Positions 18,401 through 24,400 of a stretch of 64,000 bases of DNA are shown here, piece by piece. Source of the stretch: Macrostomum lignano (taxonomy: Eukaryota). Both the position numbers and the translations under genes were made by a program. Numbering within the stretch: the stretch's first letter is position 1; the number at the start of each line of letters is the position of its first letter. A model generated the notes under the pieces. That model saw only the letters and a list, made by a program, of their open reading frames with translations. It did not search any database and was not told the origin of the DNA. The stretch covers positions 1 to 64,000 of the forward strand of contig NIVC01000811.1 of assembly GCA_002269645.1 (NCBI GenBank), read 5' to 3'.

Positions 18401-21400
18401 GGCCCACACTCCCCCGGTGCGTGCAGCCCGCATGACGGCTGAATTGTTGTTTAAGCACATTGACAAGATTGTGCAGTCAGACGCAAGCGTACTGTCGAGC
18501 AACTTTTCTATCCGTCTGCTAAAAGCCTGGGTACCTCGAGGTGGATGTGCTCTCGAGAACAGGCATCTAGAAGAGAGGCACGCTTTTTCAAAGCACTATG
18601 TCCGCATCACCAACTCGGACAAGAGATGCCTGCTGCGCGCTCTGGTCGTGGCCTGCGCCTACCTGCAATTCGTGGCCAAGTCCATCACCGAGAAGGTGTG
18701 GCGCACGATCAAGGCCAATTCGCCCACGCAGACTAAGCTGGTGGCTGAGCTACAAATCGAGGCAGGCCTCTACACGGTAAGTTTCTAGTATTTTTCTGAT
18801 AAGAATTTTTACGCAGTATCATGGAATACTAATATTTTCTGATAAGATTTTTACACAGTATCATGGAATACTAAAAGATATATTTTCTGATAAGATTTTT
18901 ACACAGTATCATGGAATACTAAAATTTTCTGATAAGAAATTTTACGATAAGGAACACTAAAAGAAATATTTTACCCTCCACACAGACTCTTCAAACCGTC
19001 TCGCAGGCTGGTCCTTTCGGCGTGGATGCACTGCCCGAAGCGATCCGTGCCCTGAACCGGCTGCATCCGGGGCGCGATTTTGGTGTACGCGTGTACCGCG
19101 CAGAGGAGGCCAACAGGTGCATCTTCAACCTGCCTGGCACCGAGATTCTGCACCTACACCTGGTCGAGCAGCACTTTAATGTGGTCACCAAGCTGCCTGC
19201 GTTTTTCGGCTCCGATCACTACTGCCCCAAGTGCGAGATGGCCTACGACTGCAATTATGAGAAGCACAAGTGCGCTTATGCCTGCAGTACATGCAAGACT
19301 CCGGGCTCCAACTGTAAGGCAAACCGCGCATATGTAAGATGCCATGATTGCGGGCTAAATTGCTATAATGCTCAGTGCCTAGAAAATCACAAGCGCAAGA
19401 ATAAGGCGGGCAGATCGCGCTGTGATTCGGTCCACGTTTGCGGCACGTGTGGCTATCTAGAAGAACTAAAAGTAGGCCAGCCCCCTGAGCATCAGTGTGG
19501 TTATGCCAAGTGCCCAGTCTGCAAGCAGTACGACGAAACTGCCACCCACGAGTGCTTTGTCACCCCGCCCAAAGCCAAAGAGTCTAGCGCCCCGTATGTT
19601 TACTATGATTTCGAGACGTACTTGGACTCTGACAAGCAGCACCGGGTACACTTGGTTACGGCTGCCACCTCCTGCGAGGCGTGTCCCAAACTCTTCCCCA
19701 GGCCCCGCTGCAGCGCGTGCGGGGGACTACACAGCTCAGCCAATTGCATTGCGGGACGCAATCTGGCGCTGGATTTTACGAGCTGTGTCTCGCACAATGA
19801 CTGTGCCTGTGGGATGCGAGAGTTTGTTTCGGTTGGGCCGCACTCTATCGATGCCTTTTACTGCTGGCTGACTAGTGTGTTCAAGCAGGGGGCAATTGCA
19901 ATTGCGCACAATGGCTCTGCGTATGACGCATTCCTCCTGCTCGGCGCCCTACTCAACGGACTGGCCAAGAAGAAGCCGCAAGTGATCTTCCAGAACAGCC
20001 GCCTAATGTACATGAAGTGCGACAAGATCACCTTCAAGGACAGCCTCAATTTCATCCCTATTGGTCTGGCGCAATTCCCAAAGGCGCTTGGTTTGGGCAC
20101 CCAACTGACCAAAGGAGATTTCCCGCACGTGTTCAATCAGCCTCAAAATTGGGGGTACGTCGGTCCCTACTGCTCAATTGATATGTACGGCGGGAAGAAG
20201 AATAAGCAGCATGACTCCATCGCCGACTGGCTGGCCAAGCAGGAGGGACAGGTGTTTAATTTTAATAAGGCGTACCTGGACTATTGCCTGCAGGACACGT
20301 TAATTTTGCGGGAAGGCTGCCTGAAATATGCCCGCCTGATTAAGGACATTTGCGGACTGGACGCATTTGTCCAATCCAACACCATTGCGGGCTTGGCCAT
20401 GTCGGTATTCACCACCAAGTTTATGGAGCCCAACACTCTTGGGGTGATTTCCCGCCGATCGGATGTACAGTCGCACAAGGCGCGGTGCTGGCTGGCACAT
20501 TTAAATGCAACCGAGTTTGGCGGCCGGTTGAGGACAGCCGATTCTGGCGGCGAGGCTTTCGCCATGGGCCGTAAGGTCGACGGCTTCGACCCAGAGACCA
20601 GGACAGTGCTGCAGTTTCATGGCTGTTTCTTCCATGGCTGTCCCAAGTGCTTCCCCAACGGCGACGTGCTGCACCCGCTCAAGAACCAGCCAATGCGGGC
20701 AATTTATGAAGAGACCGAGCGCTTCACCCGGCTGCTCTCCACTGCATACAATGTGCGTGTTCTGTGGGAGCACGACTATCAGGACGAGGGAGCGCCAGTC
20801 CAGCAGCCTATTCGCCTGGAGGAAGCCCTGTTTGGCGGCCGTACCGAGGCTTTTGTCCCGCACGCCGAGGCCACCGAGACTGTAGAGCTGCGCTATCGGG
20901 ATGTGGTAAGTTTGTACACTTGTACACACACAGTTGACATGCGTTTGAGTTTATCTTATCCTTATCCCCTAGGTGTCGCTCTACCCGACTGTCAACAAGT
21001 TTGACAAGTACCCGGTCGGGCACCCGGTACACCACCCCGAGCCTCATCTACTGGATGAGCTGCAGCTGGCCCGGTATTTTGGCATCGCCGAGGTGTCAAT
21101 TCTGCCGCCAACCAATCTCCACATCCCGCTACTGCCCGCCAAGATTAACAAGAAGTTGGTTTTCGGCCTCTGCCGCGTCTGCATGGAGACCCAGTGCAGC
21201 AGCGAGTGTACACACACTGACGCTGAGAGAATGCTCCGCGGCACGTGGTCGACCCCAGAGCTCCACAAAGCCCTGCAGTTGGGTTACAAGCTGCAGTCAG
21301 TTCATGCCCTGGCCTATTGGACCGAGACTCGCACGGGTCTGTTTGCAGATTATGTAAACACTTTTTTGAAGCTCAAAGCCGAGTCTAGCGGTTCGCCGGG

Positions 21401-24400
21401 GATGGCTGAGGACGCCAAGGCTGCCTACATGGCCAGCTTTTTCGAGCGCGAAGGCGTCCGGCTGGAAAAGGTGGAGGAGAATCCTGGCTTGCGCTTTGTG
21501 GCCAAGATTTTTCTAAACTCGTAAGTTTTTTCTACTTGCAGTGGGGGCCGTGTTTTTCTACTTACAAAAAAAAATTTATTTTTCCCTGCAGGCTCTGGGG
21601 CAAATTCTGCCAGCGCGACGACCTGACCTCCACAGAGATTGTGGACAGCTACGAGGCGTGGCTGCAGCGCCTGACCGACCCCTCGATCAAGGTCAAGTCG
21701 TGCGAGCCAATTGGGGAGAGCTTCATGATGCTCGAGTACAAGCCCCGATTTGGCGGTGCTGGCGAGCGGGCGTTCAAGTACGCTAATGTACCTATTGGCG
21801 TTTTCACCACCTCCCACGCCCGGCTGCGACTCTACGAGGCTCTGGAGGGCCTAGGAACCCGAGTCATTTACGCCGATACCGATTCGTAAGTAATTTTTTC
21901 ACTGTCTCTGTCTCTCTTTCTCCCCTTAACACTTTATTCTCCTCCTTCTCCCAGGGTTGTATACCGCTGCTCCCCGGGCGAGTACGAGCCTCCGGGCGGT
22001 TCGAGTTTGGGGCAGTGGACTGACGAGGTACCTGCTGGCTGCCGCATGGTACAGTTCACCACGGGAGGCCCCAAGCTCTACCGGTACTTAGTGGAGAAGC
22101 CCGACGGGTCGCTGTACTCGGTGCTCAAGTGCAAGGGCATCAGAGTCACCCCGAGATTTCCGAGCGCGAGGACGAGCTGCAGGAAATTCTGCGTCACGGC
22201 GGGACTGTACGCCTGCCCCAGGCCCAGTTCAGGCGCGATAAGGCTAGCTGTACAATCCGGACCCTCGAGATGGACAAGACTTTCCAGCGCGTAATGACTA
22301 AGAGGGTGTATGGGGCTGCTAGCCGCCCGTATGGCTTTCGGGAGTGAGTGAAAGATAAGGATCTGTCTTTTTACGCCTCCCTGCCTGGGATTCCCCTATG
22401 TGCCCACTTGGGATCCCTTGACTCGTGGGGATGAAAATGGTTTTACACCCGCATTGTACTTGGGCCTCGCAACACACGGGGGATCCCTCAACTTGGAGAG
22501 CTACCCTCTGGGGATCCACTAAAGCCCCGTGGGAGGTGCTGTAAAGTTTGACTGGAATTCTCTTTGTATGCGGTCTGTTACTCTACCTCCACTGTACATT
22601 GGGGCATCATTTGACACCCGGGACCGCACTGTACTTGGGATCCGCTAAAACCCCTATTTGTATGCGGTCTGTTATTCTGCCCGCCCTGTGCAATGTGAGG
22701 GGTCCTTGATAACCCCCCATTTGGGGAGGATTGGAATGCTCTCTGCCTGAACTGTACTTGGGATCCCCCGGCCCTGGGGAGGAATTTCTCTATGTTACTC
22801 CGCCCGCACTGTACATTGGGATCCCCGGCCCTGGCTCTGGGGGCGTGTCTCGAATATCCTGGGCTGGATATTTTACTTTGCACCTACATTATATGCTTAA
22901 TTTTGCATACATATGTTGTATTATACTTAACTTCCAGTGTGTGTATTTTATCCTATGCACTGAAATTTGTACCTGCGGGTTATTATGCAAAAATGTATCG
23001 TTTAAAATGCGCCTACATTATATGCTATGTAATTTTCTTGTATTATACTCAATTTGCACCTACATTGTGTGTATGTATGCACCTACATAATTGGAATCTA
23101 GAGTGTGTGCAATATACTGTGTGTATTTCCACCTATGTAGCGCCTACAGTACCTGCTTTGTCTATTTCTGCCCATGCACCTACATTGTGTGTTTTTGCTG
23201 CTCATATGGTCCAATATGTATTATGCGTCATTATTCACACCTACCAATATGTTTTATCTACTTTTTATGTAAATATACGCAATTTCATCTACTATAAGTA
23301 GTTTTCACTAGCCTAATATCGCTGACTAGATATCTTACATATCGGAGAGTGGTAGAGTGTACATATCGCGAGAGTGTACACTCGGGGTGCCTGCGGCTCG
23401 GTAGAGTGTACACTCGGGGTGCCTGCGGCTCGGTAGAGTGTACACTCGGGGTGCCTGCGGCATGGGCGCCTGCAGCATGGGCGCCTGCTGCTCTGGAGGG
23501 CATACATATCGGGAGGGAGGGCATACATATCGGGGTACATATCGGGAGGGTGGGCATACATATCGGGAGGGAGGGCATACATATCGGGGTACATATCGGG
23601 AGGGTGCGCCTGCGGCATGGGCGCCTAATTGGCGCCTGGATGGCGCCACGCGCCTGCGGCGCGCGCGCCAGCCAATGAGAGGCGAGGAGGGTTGACACCC
23701 ACCCCACCTCCAAAAAGGGCGGATCTACCAGTCCTTAGTAGTAATAGGCCTAATAATCATGGTAGGCATAGGCCTTGTAGCTGTTGTGAGTTTTAGTAGC
23801 CTATGATAGGCCTAATGTCATGATAGCCTAACTGTCATAGCTAGCTATAGCGTAAAGGCTAAGCTTATAAGTTATAAAATAATATAGACCTACTGGTTAA
23901 ATTACTTTCTGGTTGATAGTAAGTTAGTTAGAAGCCCTTCTGATCCTTTTCTCAAGCTTTGTTGAATTCGTAGTACTATTATTGTACTAGCAGTATCTGC
24001 TGTCTGCGTAAAACCTTAGGAAATATTAAAACGAGTTGCATATAATGATATAATTACTCAAAATATCTAGATTACAGCCTAAATGAACTATAAATACACA
24101 TATTATATGAAGCTTCTGGGGCTCAAATGTAGTGCATGCTTCTTTAAAACAGTCGACTCAAGTCGAGTAGATGCTTTTTTGAAGGCAAGTACCGATAAAT
24201 ACATGCAAACAAGCGGGCTTTCAAATAATTTTACAATATTTACGAGTGTTGCGTCCTGATACAACGGTAACTTCTAGTGGTCCTTGGTTCGAAGCTTCAC
24301 AAGCTTTAAACTCCATAAACTCGAAGCTTCACAAGCTCAAAAACTCCATAAACTCGAAGCTTCACAAGCTCAAAACTCCATAAACTCGAAGCTTCACAAG

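Follow-up and report, generated by a model that had tools for sequence, protein, structure and literature searches.

In Macrostomum lignano, the gene for the protein-primed DNA polymerase of family B (pPolB) in an endogenous Maverick/Polinton-derived element contains six introns, three of which (introns 4, 5 and 6) each split one of the catalytic motifs A, B and C. We favor the explanation, at a probability of roughly three in four, that these are ordinary U2-type introns, that the bias towards motifs extends across the polymerase family, and that it arose by sporadic gain followed by biased retention. Coordinates (Table 1) refer to the window, i.e. the whole 64-kb stretch of DNA that was analyzed.

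Introns 4–6 interrupt the catalytic motifs

To model the gene, we translated it exon after exon and compared it by tblastn with the models of its siblings, together with Pfam DNA_pol_B_2. The model carries one frameshift and neither an in-frame stop nor a large indel; either a genuine mutation or an error in the long-read consensus may underlie the frameshift, and this copy may itself be inactive. Pfam DNA_pol_B_2 matched both exons flanking intron 4 (E 5e-14 and 1e-12). The interrupted blocks were identified as motifs A, B and C because the family profile aligns to phi29 DNA polymerase (PDB 1XHX). Removal of intron 2 restores VTGPGFTARL, in agreement with sibling models, and removal of intron 3, which is AT-rich with a tandem repeat of ~45 nt, restores GLYT/TLQTVSQ as in P0006 (slashes mark splice junctions).

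An earlier sequence-only reading of this DNA had described three GTAAGT…YAG introns with pyrimidine tracts cutting the three PolB motifs, immediate stops in unspliced motifs B and C, and an intron-free exonuclease exon. Direct reading of the intron ends and stops, the Pfam matches and the phi29 alignment confirmed this observation, including the uninterrupted exon. Its count of three was correct for the motifs and covers only half of the introns, since introns 1–3 also belong to the gene.

Table 1. Features of the element, its polymerase gene and the surrounding host intron
Feature	Position	Strand	Description
Host intron of attractin/MEGF8-like gene	13253–24543	+	11.3 kb; holds the element, same orientation
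Left target-site duplication	14970–14975		AATAGG, direct reading; hexamer identical at 23743–23748
Whole mobile element	14976–23742		8,767 bp; bounded by inverted repeats and 6-bp duplication
Left terminal inverted repeat (TIR)	14976–16329		~1.35 kb, internal tandem repeats; blastn
Small divergent gene	16375–17046	-	165-aa ATG ORF 16549–17046 and likely second exon 16375–16431
Stretch between the two divergent genes	17047–17291		TATATATA box
pPolB gene	17292–22347	+	Seven exons, six introns; coding sequence 3,830 nt
pPolB first exon	17292–17352	+	Placed solely from ATG, donor and matching phase
Intron 1 (predicted)	17353–18092	+	740 nt, phase 1; TTTATG/gtaagt…ttttcag/ACGCGT; phase fits exon 2
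Intron 2	18138–18207	+	70 nt, phase 1; variable N-terminal region; GACCGG/gtgagt…catgcag/GTTTTA
Intron 3	18777–18985	+	209 nt, phase 0; TACACG/gtaagt…cacacag/ACTCTT
Exonuclease-domain exon	18986–20905	+	1,920 nt, uninterrupted
Intron 4	20906–20972	+	67 nt, phase 0; GATGTG/gtaagt…cccctag/GTGTCG; motif A YRDV/VSLYP
Intron 5	21521–21591	+	71 nt, phase 2 in Ser codon; AAACTC/gtaagt…cctgcag/GCTCTG; motif B KIFLN(S)/LWGKF
Intron 6	21886–21954	+	69 nt, phase 2 in Ser codon; CGATTC/gtaagt…ctcccag/GGTTGT; motif C YADTD(S)/VVY
Right TIR	22451–23742		blastn
Right target-site duplication	23743–23748		AATAGG, direct reading

Five of the six donors read GTAAGT and one reads GTGAGT, the acceptors are CAG or TAG, and the tracts ahead of the intron 4–6 acceptors consist of 80–100% pyrimidines. 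The GC content is 0.35–0.41 in the introns compared to 0.56 in the exon. Splicing of introns 4–6 restores frame and motif exactly, and the exons meet end to end when aligned with intronless relatives or phi29, as they do in 47 sibling models, whereas unspliced introns 5 and 6 present TCG TAA at the junction, an immediate stop. The three introns are unrelated to one another and matched only themselves within the window; an Rfam search of 14900–23800 found no family. Judged from sequence and public gene models, introns 4–6 look like genuine, ordinary U2-type spliceosomal introns, also because the 65% identical relative L089 keeps the sites in motifs A and B despite differing intron sequence and length.

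pPolB belongs to a multicopy family: 36 + 11 UniRef models from M. lignano, all of them gene predictions, are 62–97% identical to it. Junction IFLNS/LWGKFC occurs in all 38 of 38 sibling models, YRDV/VSLYPT in 22 and DTDS/VVYR in 19. The junctions of introns 4–6 are used by sibling copies of two subfamilies; aberrant models nevertheless break exactly at these junctions. In 15 of 42 models the motif-A donor is paired with an acceptor located in exon 5, a junction that would remove half of motif A. The expectation that such a layout hides the gene from ORF-based searches did not hold: a strong Pfam match is obtained with the 660-aa ORF by itself, and the 47 UniRef models span the junctions.

A reduced Maverick/Polinton derivative

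The two TIRs pair over 14976–16329 with 23742–22451 (blastn), with ungapped blocks 96–99% complementary. The GC content of the element is ~0.52–0.55 versus 0.34–0.43 in the upstream flank. Between the TIRs lie only pPolB and one small gene, whose second exon is suggested by sibling models that splice PWGNL/ to CFESADEEE…. Homologues of the small gene were found in M. lignano only (71–97% identical); its 165-aa protein gave no significant Pfam or PHROG match, PC4 remaining below the cutoff (E 0.034). The stretch between the two genes, with its TATATATA box, is likely a bidirectional promoter, a putative assignment from sequence.

Maverick/Polinton elements are self-synthesizing (Kapitonov & Jurka 2006; Pritham et al. 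2007; summarized in PMC5718144 and PMC8097293). The Maverick/Polinton identity of pPolB follows from Pfam DNA_pol_B_2 on two exons, the phi29 motif alignment and clade members in Maverick gene sets. The M. lignano element resembles these elements in its long TIRs, its 6-bp target duplication and a protein-primed PolB of the same clade as polymerases that lie beside an A32-type ATPase, a DJR-like protein and an rve integrase. However, at 8.8 kb it is shorter than the 15–20 kb of a Maverick/Polinton. None of the ORFs between its TIRs encodes an rve integrase, and no ORF for a DJR major capsid, penton, A32-type ATPase or adenain-like protease was found within 14976–23742. Because integrase and capsid genes are absent, the element is a reduced Maverick/Polinton derivative and not a full Polinton. 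It also differs from intronless Mavericks in the six spliceosomal introns of its polymerase gene.

Intron sites in relatives from other lineages

Core genes of Maverick/Polinton elements are regarded as intronless (PMC8097293, PMC10120064, bioRxiv 10.1101/2022.07.12.499685), and intact vertebrate and nematode Mavericks were reported to be so (PMC8097293; bioRxiv 10.1101/2022.07.12.499685). In accordance with this, and with the sequence-only reading, most pPolB relatives carry no intron: motif A is uninterrupted in 52 loci, motif B in 38 and motif C in 34, and motif B is uninterrupted in 105 of 149 representatives. A minority has introns, and these are concentrated in the most conserved blocks, namely Exo II, YEFxGC and the three motifs A, B and C. 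On DNA we located them in L001 (A), L043 (YEFH/GC, B and C), L042 (B), L023 (C), L034 and L002 (YEFxGC), L074 (Exo II and YEFxGC), L056, L085 (B and C) and L086 (B). In this survey exact junctions are easiest to detect in conserved blocks, whereas those in the variable N-terminal third, which holds three in M. lignano, would mostly escape notice; the family trees are crude neighbor-joining trees without support values.

The motif-B site recurs in the same phase on DNA in L085, L086 and L089, and its presence in six further relatives was deduced from called ORFs, many such motif-B assignments relying on ORF-end signatures and not on DNA. In L085 and L086 (47% identity) the motif-B introns measure ~47 and ~125 nt. 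L089 shares both the motif-A and the motif-B site with the window; its motif-A intron is 97 nt long versus 67 nt here and cannot be aligned, and nucleotide similarity between the two loci begins at the intron 4 acceptor and stops at the intron 5 donor. Motif C is cut 4 nt upstream of the M. lignano site, at DTD^1/S, in L043, L023 and L085. The position in motif B is shared exactly with several distant relatives, while in others motifs A and C are cut 4–5 nt away.

The layout is genuine and not random, and a minority of relatives from other animals show it at identical or neighboring sites. It is less novel in M. lignano than first proposed because the sites recur in relatives, which the earlier reading had itself named as grounds for refutation; as a whole, that interpretation is partly supported.

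Concerning gene neighborhoods, the polymerase of the intronless L003 is followed by an A32-like ATPase, L048 contains an ATPase, a weak DJR-like match and an rve integrase with a chromodomain, and an A32-like ORF is present in the intron-bearing L085. Many of the metagenome relatives are visibly decayed.

Introns are placed non-randomly

If six introns are placed uniformly in the 3,830-nt coding sequence, all three motifs, in their textbook definitions, are struck with P = 2.8e-5. A permutation of conservation windows yielded P = 0.006 for the three M. lignano sites, 2e-4 for seven sites from other lineages and 1.5e-5 for all 10. ORF ends cluster at motif B as well: 16 of 45 fall within 7 of ~420 residues. 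In the part downstream of the query, which is free of detection bias, 16 of 42 ends still lie in 7 of 213 residues. The motif placement of introns 4–6 is non-random and is not peculiar to M. lignano.

Alternative explanations and proposed model

We considered whether the motif clustering results from chance and ascertainment, introns being noticed where motifs make them conspicuous. The motif windows were chosen after looking, tblastn is poor at finding introns in the variable regions of relatives, and three M. lignano introns lie outside any motif. However, the uniform-placement test used textbook definitions, an independent set of relatives shows the same bias (P = 2e-4), and the clustering of ORF ends persists where detection is unbiased, so we regard this explanation as quite improbable. 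It is even harder to believe that introns 4–6 are no introns at all but short insertions in a decayed copy that resemble GT…AG by chance. The frameshift and the decay of many metagenome relatives would fit such a scenario, yet all three restore frame and motif exactly, dozens of sibling models from two subfamilies use identical junctions, and sites are kept in L089 (A and B, with different intron sequence) and at 47% identity in L085 and L086 (B). A domesticated host gene with host-gene introns would be in line with six introns, close to the 5 per gene that the host has on average (PMC5730564), and with the missing integrase and capsid genes. This is very unlikely in view of the 1.35-kb TIRs that are 96–99% alike, the intact 6-bp target duplication, the nesting in an intron of another gene and the dozens of diverged copies in one genome.

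That the introns descend from or were placed by a homing-type process recognizing the conserved motif DNA, be it one of inteins, of group I/II introns or of intron-generating transposons with sequence specificity, is similarly remote. At three fixed sites of their active-site region, family-B polymerases do harbor inteins (PMC549080), introners occur in dinoflagellate Maverick-like elements (PMC12166617), and motifs B and C contain several distinct intron sites few nucleotides apart. But with 67–71 nt the introns fall far below the size of a self-splicing intron or an intein, the lengths are not all multiples of three (67 and 71 nt) and stops lie inside, the Rfam search of the element gave no family, the pol-c intein site YGD/TDS (PMC549080) coincides with none of the intron sites, and the three introns are mutually unrelated and unrepeated within the window. 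A splicing switch, in which retention of introns 4–6 would be regulated by tissue or stage and truncated N-terminal/exonuclease products or message decay would result elsewhere, also appears unlikely, though less so than the others. Any one of the three introns, if retained, would disable the catalytic core, the alternative motif-A junction in 15 of 42 sibling models might reflect such use, and the bias across lineages could stem from selection for a fail-safe. The six strong consensus donors and good pyrimidine tracts, however, give no sign of weak or regulated sites, the alternative junction may be an artefact of gene prediction or come from deleted copies, and most relatives do without any intron.

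Under the preferred explanation of sporadic gain and biased retention, pPolB would be transcribed in the nucleus, its seven exons and strong GTAAGT donors giving it the look of a host gene. A catalytically complete polymerase could be translated only from mRNA lacking introns 4, 5 and 6: retained intron 5 or 6 would stop translation immediately and retained intron 4 would shift the frame, in line with the earlier claim that activity depends on complete splicing. The introns would be part of the mobile element and be copied along as DNA: the TIRs of this copy are near-identical, its target duplication is intact, and its siblings share the junctions. What we observed is the anatomy of the gene, sites that stay in place while the intron sequence diverges, and an enrichment by statistical test; why introns are enriched in the motifs we infer. 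Biased retention is favored since only exact excision can rid an active-site motif of an intron, and favorable G/G or AG/ contexts at invariant Gly/Ser codons possibly contribute.

Retention bias leaves the persistence of three larger introns in the poorly conserved N-terminus unexplained, and it draws no line between intron sliding and repeated gain.

Comparison with known systems

A splicing switch would follow the logic of the Drosophila P element, whose third intron, studied by Laski, Rio and Rubin in 1986, is reportedly removed in the germline only, and this regulation is said to have been demonstrated. As in that case, an active transposon enzyme requires intron removal, retention giving a truncated protein in the P element. 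However, the P element encodes a transposase with demonstrated regulation, whereas the enzyme here is a replicative polymerase for which regulation would be conjectural. In phi29 DNA polymerase (PDB 1XHX/2PYJ), likewise a protein-primed PolB, Dx2SLYP, Kx3NSxYG and YxDTDS align, but this phage enzyme of 575 aa lacks the ~600-aa N-terminal and Cys-rich regions as well as introns.

That conserved sites are preferred has been documented for inteins as well as group I introns, though not for spliceosomal introns (PMC2814812), as the sequence-only reading had correctly stated. Like the inteins at pol-a, pol-b and pol-c of family-B polymerases (PMC549080; PMC2814812), the introns interrupt active-site motifs, prefer the most conserved positions and need exact removal. 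Unlike inteins, which are removed at the protein level and spread by homing endonucleases, these 47–125-nt GT-AG introns leave the RNA and show no sign of homing. The introners of dinoflagellate eupolintoviral (Maverick-like) elements (PMC12166617) are also spliceosomal introns, some of them in coding regions. They are, however, multicopy intron-generating transposons located mostly outside genes, whereas the M. lignano introns are single-copy in the window, unrelated to each other, situated in catalytic motifs and found in an animal host.

We tentatively suggest, while considering it somewhat less than an even chance, that spliceosomal introns behave in an intein-like manner in this animal Maverick clade: rare, and repeatedly gained or kept in Exo II, YEFxGC and motifs A, B and C at sites that are identical or 1–8 nt apart in different lineages. 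If so, a strong preference of spliceosomal introns for conserved sites would be seen in a gene family for the first time, and would provide a natural test of whether intervening sequences survive by being hard to lose or as a selected fail-safe.

The host gene around the element

The intron that holds the element has a …CACCTG/gtaaga donor and a …tctgcag/GCTTCTATGG acceptor, and joining the exons across it gives an EGF motif. The downstream ORFs are host exons with Kelch, EGF and PSI Pfam matches. Host genes in the window contain candidate introns of a size comparable to introns 4–6 (~70 nt).

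The polymerase gene and its motif-splitting introns

The pPolB gene, which encodes the family-B, protein-primed DNA polymerase of a Maverick/Polinton-type element, is read here as seven exons and six introns, numbered 5′ to 3′ (Table). Reading the DNA directly, we found introns 4, 5 and 6, which split motifs A, B and C, exactly where the sequence-only reading had placed them; its list was correct for these three but lacked three more introns upstream in the same gene. Their removal rebuilds all three motifs; the separately translated exons give …AKIFLN, LWGKFCQ…VIYADTD and VVYRCS…. 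The motif B and motif C introns each interrupt a TCG serine codon between its second and third bases, and the unspliced message therefore reads TCG TAA, again as proposed. The motif names are justified by the alignment of the family profile to phi29 DNA polymerase (PDB 1XHX, E 0.0035), which pairs the three blocks with Dx2SLYP, Kx3NSxYG and YxDTDS; Pfam DNA_pol_B_2 was matched in both exons bordering the motif A intron. We infer the first exon solely from an ATG, a GTAAGT donor and a matching phase. Intron 3 is AT-rich (GC 0.26 at 18792-18972) and consists mostly of a ~45-nt tandem repeat in 3.5 copies. Compared exon by exon with public M. lignano UniRef models of both pPolB subfamilies (sibling models), the copy in the window carries one frameshift, either a real mutation or a long-read consensus error, and no in-frame stop.

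Features of the element, its polymerase gene and downstream host genes in the window, and intron sites in relatives (loci on metagenome or Logan contigs; a vertical bar marks the splice site, a number after ^ the phase)
Feature	Position	Strand	Details
Mobile element	14976-23742		8,767 bp; holds pPolB
Inverted repeats	14976-16329 and 22451-23742		~1.35 kb; blocks 96-99% complementary
165-aa ORF	16549-17046	-	sole other gene between repeats; divergent from pPolB
pPolB gene	17292-22347	+	seven exons, six introns, coding sequence 3,830 nt
Intron 1	17353-18092	+	740 nt; putative, behind short first exon starting at ATG 17292
Intron 2	18138-18207	+	70 nt; sibling models and DNA reading
Intron 3	18777-18985	+	209 nt, with tandem repeat; sibling models and DNA reading
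Intron 4 (motif A)	20906-20972	+	67 nt; GTAAGT start, TAG end, pyrimidine-rich tract, phase 0
Intron 5 (motif B)	21521-21591	+	71 nt; GTAAGT start, CAG end, pyrimidine-rich tract
Intron 6 (motif C)	21886-21954	+	69 nt; GTAAGT start, CAG end, pyrimidine-rich tract
WD40-repeat gene	47437-49980		downstream host gene
RING-variant (MARCH-like) gene	51058-52356		downstream host gene
GH20 hexosaminidase gene	55925-60673		downstream host gene, with carbohydrate-binding domain
L001	motif A, DFTS^2|LYP		5 nt downstream of M. lignano site
L043, L042	motif B, FWG^1|KF		8 nt downstream of M. lignano site
L043, L023	motif C, DTD^1|S		4 nt upstream of M. lignano site
L002, L043; L034, L074	YEFxGCxxHGC block		phase 0 in L002 and L043; 1 nt later in L034 and L074
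L074	1160-1350, Exo II, AHNMK|GYD		
L056	adjoining invariant Trp		

The three segments are very probably genuine introns (about 0.9). We base this on four lines of sequence evidence. Taking them out re-establishes, at each of the three sites, both the reading frame and the homologous sequence. Among 47 sibling models from two subfamilies ~62% identical, the junctions were found as IFLNS|LWGKFC (38/38), YRDV|VSLYPT (22) and DTDS|VVYR (19), and even faulty models break precisely there. A relative on a Logan contig (L089, exon 65% identical in protein) keeps the motif A site (GAC GTT|gtatgt…acag|GTG TCG) and the motif B donor (AAT TC|gtaagt); at the nucleotide level it resembles the window from the intron A acceptor up to the motif B donor, and its motif A intron, of 97 nt, cannot be aligned to ours. 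GC content is 0.35-0.41 in the introns versus 0.56 in the exon, and host genes of the window also have candidate introns of ~70 nt. All sequence features expected of spliceosomal introns are present in the three segments. This reading of M. lignano DNA covers one locus. Searches with the large exon (18986-20905) returned M. lignano UniRef models in 36 of 39 matches (56-99% identity); matches of word-indexed protein searches were almost exclusively such models, with no transcript-derived contigs among them.

The segments are neither self-splicing introns nor inteins nor demonstrable introners. No Rfam family was found in the element region, and a search of the window for introner-like repetition gave self-hits only. 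Identity with intein sites was ruled out, since the pol-c intein site is YGD|TDS (PMC549080). As judged from the DNA, this is a nuclear, host-style gene, and a complete polymerase requires the removal of introns 4-6. Retained introns would cut the product short ahead of the palm motifs or inside them, which bears out the earlier proposal that the polymerase depends on splicing. When the element moves, its introns go along as DNA.

A reduced Maverick derivative

The element is flanked on both sides by a perfect 6-bp duplication, AATAGG. Apart from pPolB, only the 165-aa ORF lies between its inverted repeats; ORFs for an integrase, a packaging ATPase, a protease or capsid proteins are absent. 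Homologues of the 165-aa ORF occur in M. lignano only (71-97% identity), and it gave no significant family match, a PC4-like match staying under the cutoff. Its gene probably has a second exon at 16375-16431, where sibling models splice PWGNL|CFESADEEE…. Because the polymerase, terminal inverted repeats and target duplication agree with those of Mavericks, while integrase and capsid module are missing and the size does not fit, we file the element as a reduced derivative of Mavericks that has Maverick-type ends and not as a complete Polinton. The polymerase clade is of Maverick type. Relatives include an intronless protein of 1,486 aa followed by an A32-like ATPase ORF (L003), a locus with an ATPase, a weak double-jelly-roll match and an rve integrase with chromodomain (L048), and an intron-bearing locus with an A32-like ORF downstream (L085); an IMG/VR scan yielded one distant, uninformative locus. 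That a polymerase-only element keeps Maverick-type ends prompts one to ask where its integration function comes from.

As the flanks show, a host attractin/MEGF8-like gene that runs in the same orientation harbours the element in one of its introns (11.3 kb, 13253-24543), and its Kelch, EGF and PSI exons follow directly downstream. Some M. lignano UniRef models (P0018, P0043) fuse pPolB to host domains (C2H2 zinc fingers, reprolysin), which is consistent with predictors merging sense-orientation elements nested in host introns. A Vsr-like endonuclease for the YEFxGCxxHGC block and an OTU-like protease for the N-terminal CLxRA block were considered; there was no Pfam match even at E ≤ 5, and neither identity is claimed. 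A sigma-70 promoter scan was discarded, the host being eukaryotic.

Intron sites in relatives

We scanned metagenome contigs and obtained 80 loci, mostly anonymous, several of them decayed, the decay being recorded as counts. Measured against the intronless P0051, most were uninterrupted: motif A was read through in 52 loci, motif B in 38, motif C in 34. Every clean, readable GT-AG interruption fell within a conserved block (Table); the motif B acceptor of L042 is non-canonical. M. lignano has no intron in the Exo II or YEFxGC blocks, unlike L002, L034, L043 and L074. One locus with 1.2-kb and 0.45-kb interruptions near motifs A and C (L080) was decayed, allowed no clean GT-AG solution and was left uncounted, and two candidates whose ORF calls begin at SLYP (L087, L088) proved to have an uninterrupted motif A.

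An exhaustive search with exon 5, which lies between introns 4 and 5, gave 3,969 relatives, of which the best 149 were taken for motif B. The motif was read through in 105 of these 149, and among the short-tailed ORF ends 16 of 45 lay inside its seven residues. Eight of these 16 ended in …LNS* or …LNR*, one of them a Planococcus citri (mealybug) RefSeq protein; an ORF call is expected to end in this way where a GT donor interrupts the serine codon behind its second base, as at the M. lignano site. Part of the motif B evidence comes from such ORF ends. DNA of L085 (AAC AG|gtgagg…acag|T) and L086 (AAC TC|gtaagt…gcag|T) places the motif B site at exactly the same position across ~47% protein identity; motif C carries an intron of the DTD^1 type in L085 and is uninterrupted in L086. 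Whether relatives share the M. lignano sites, as the sequence-only reading had asked, thus has a divided answer: motif B is shared exactly, but sites in motifs A and C have so far been found only shifted, by 5 and 4 nt, except for motif A in L089, whose contig ends ahead of motif C. ORF ends also pile up in the NVVxAAxxTxxARL block before motif C (P0066, P0158, P0168, P0164, P0104, P0203) and, in 3-4 cases, at LGxxTDE after it (P0113, P0165, P0061), clusters that may mark further intron hot spots.

Placement of introns at conserved sites

With six introns placed uniformly on 3,830 nt, a hit in each of the three textbook motifs A, B and C has P = 2.8e-5, so the clustering holds against chance. 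On a conservation score with a ±2-residue window over an alignment of 13 uninterrupted relatives, the three M. lignano sites rank at the 86th-98th percentile within the alignable core (mean, P = 0.006). Sites outside M. lignano are likewise enriched for conservation (P = 2e-4; all ten sites, P = 1.5e-5), with detection in relatives biased against the variable N-terminus.

A preference for conserved sites is not expected of spliceosomal introns; in inteins and group I introns it has been explained partly by the need for exact removal (PMC2814812). On the model of that explanation we favour biased retention: introns would be gained sporadically in a normally compact, intronless element and would last longest at sites that tolerate nothing but exact excision, so that different lineages would come to carry them in the same motifs at different nucleotides. 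Splice-friendly contexts possibly contribute, with G at -1 in 10/14 junctions, G at +1 in 9/14 and several junctions at invariant Gly or AGY-Ser codons, and are insufficient alone. One suggestion of the sequence-only reading was a switch, in which dependence on splicing could restrict replication to a tissue or stage. The P element is a respectable precedent for such a switch, but all donors here are strong, and the sequence therefore gives it no support. One loose end bears on this idea. In 15 of 42 sibling models the motif A donor (YRDV|) is joined to an acceptor at 21371|21372 inside exon 5 (…ttttttgaag|CTCAAAGCC; product LKAESS…), so that ~133 residues are dropped, half of motif A among them. 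Alternative splicing may account for this, as may deleted copies or a deleted subfamily, or an artefact of the predictor.

The distribution of introns is mosaic. Crude trees set M. lignano beside L043 and spread the remaining intron-bearing lineages apart. The pattern could stem from old introns that were often lost or shifted, or from repeated gains, and the trees (neighbour-joining, no support values) are too weak to tell shared ancestry from repeated gain.

Relation to described Mavericks

Intact vertebrate and nematode Mavericks are described as intronless in published surveys, which treat endogenous viral elements as intron-free (PMC8097293; bioRxiv 10.1101/2022.07.12.499685; PMC10120064). 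Maverick/Polinton searches assume intronless genes and use prokaryote-style gene callers (PMC10120064), pipelines that would truncate or miscount intron-bearing members. The closest published case is that of introners in dinoflagellate Maverick-like elements (PMC12166617), and our literature search found no paper on Macrostomum Mavericks. The single locus is less novel than at first supposed, because UniRef gene models already imply the M. lignano junctions and the motif B intron occurs widely in public sequence that lacks annotation. More interesting is the family-wide crowding of spliceosomal introns in catalytic motifs, which appears to be undescribed. Long-resident animal Maverick lineages can gain a host-like gene structure and yet transpose as DNA, introns included, and a polymerase family with shared and shifted motif introns offers a compact data set on intron gain, sliding and loss.

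Surroundings of the element

Upstream lie two satellite families, one with a 23-nt unit (1-1458, 3678-7231), the other with a 22-nt unit (2593-2899, 8367-12310), among them short TTAGGG-type runs (2314-2369, 8087-8142, 12940-12997). The block at ~1984-2899 is repeated at ~7753-8700, a duplicated satellite/telomere-like array adjoining the host gene. A 110-nt inverted pair (13340-13446 and 24203-24312, 90% identity) flanks the element within the same host intron and could represent a MITE-like or foldback repeat, or else what is left of an earlier insertion. Introns of the attractin/MEGF8-like gene are packed with tandem repeats (25549-26127, 34224-35108, 35943-36452, 43175-44823), which make long spurious ORFs (LSIY…, ISPYRT…, GFGIGMM…), a trap for ORF-based annotation.
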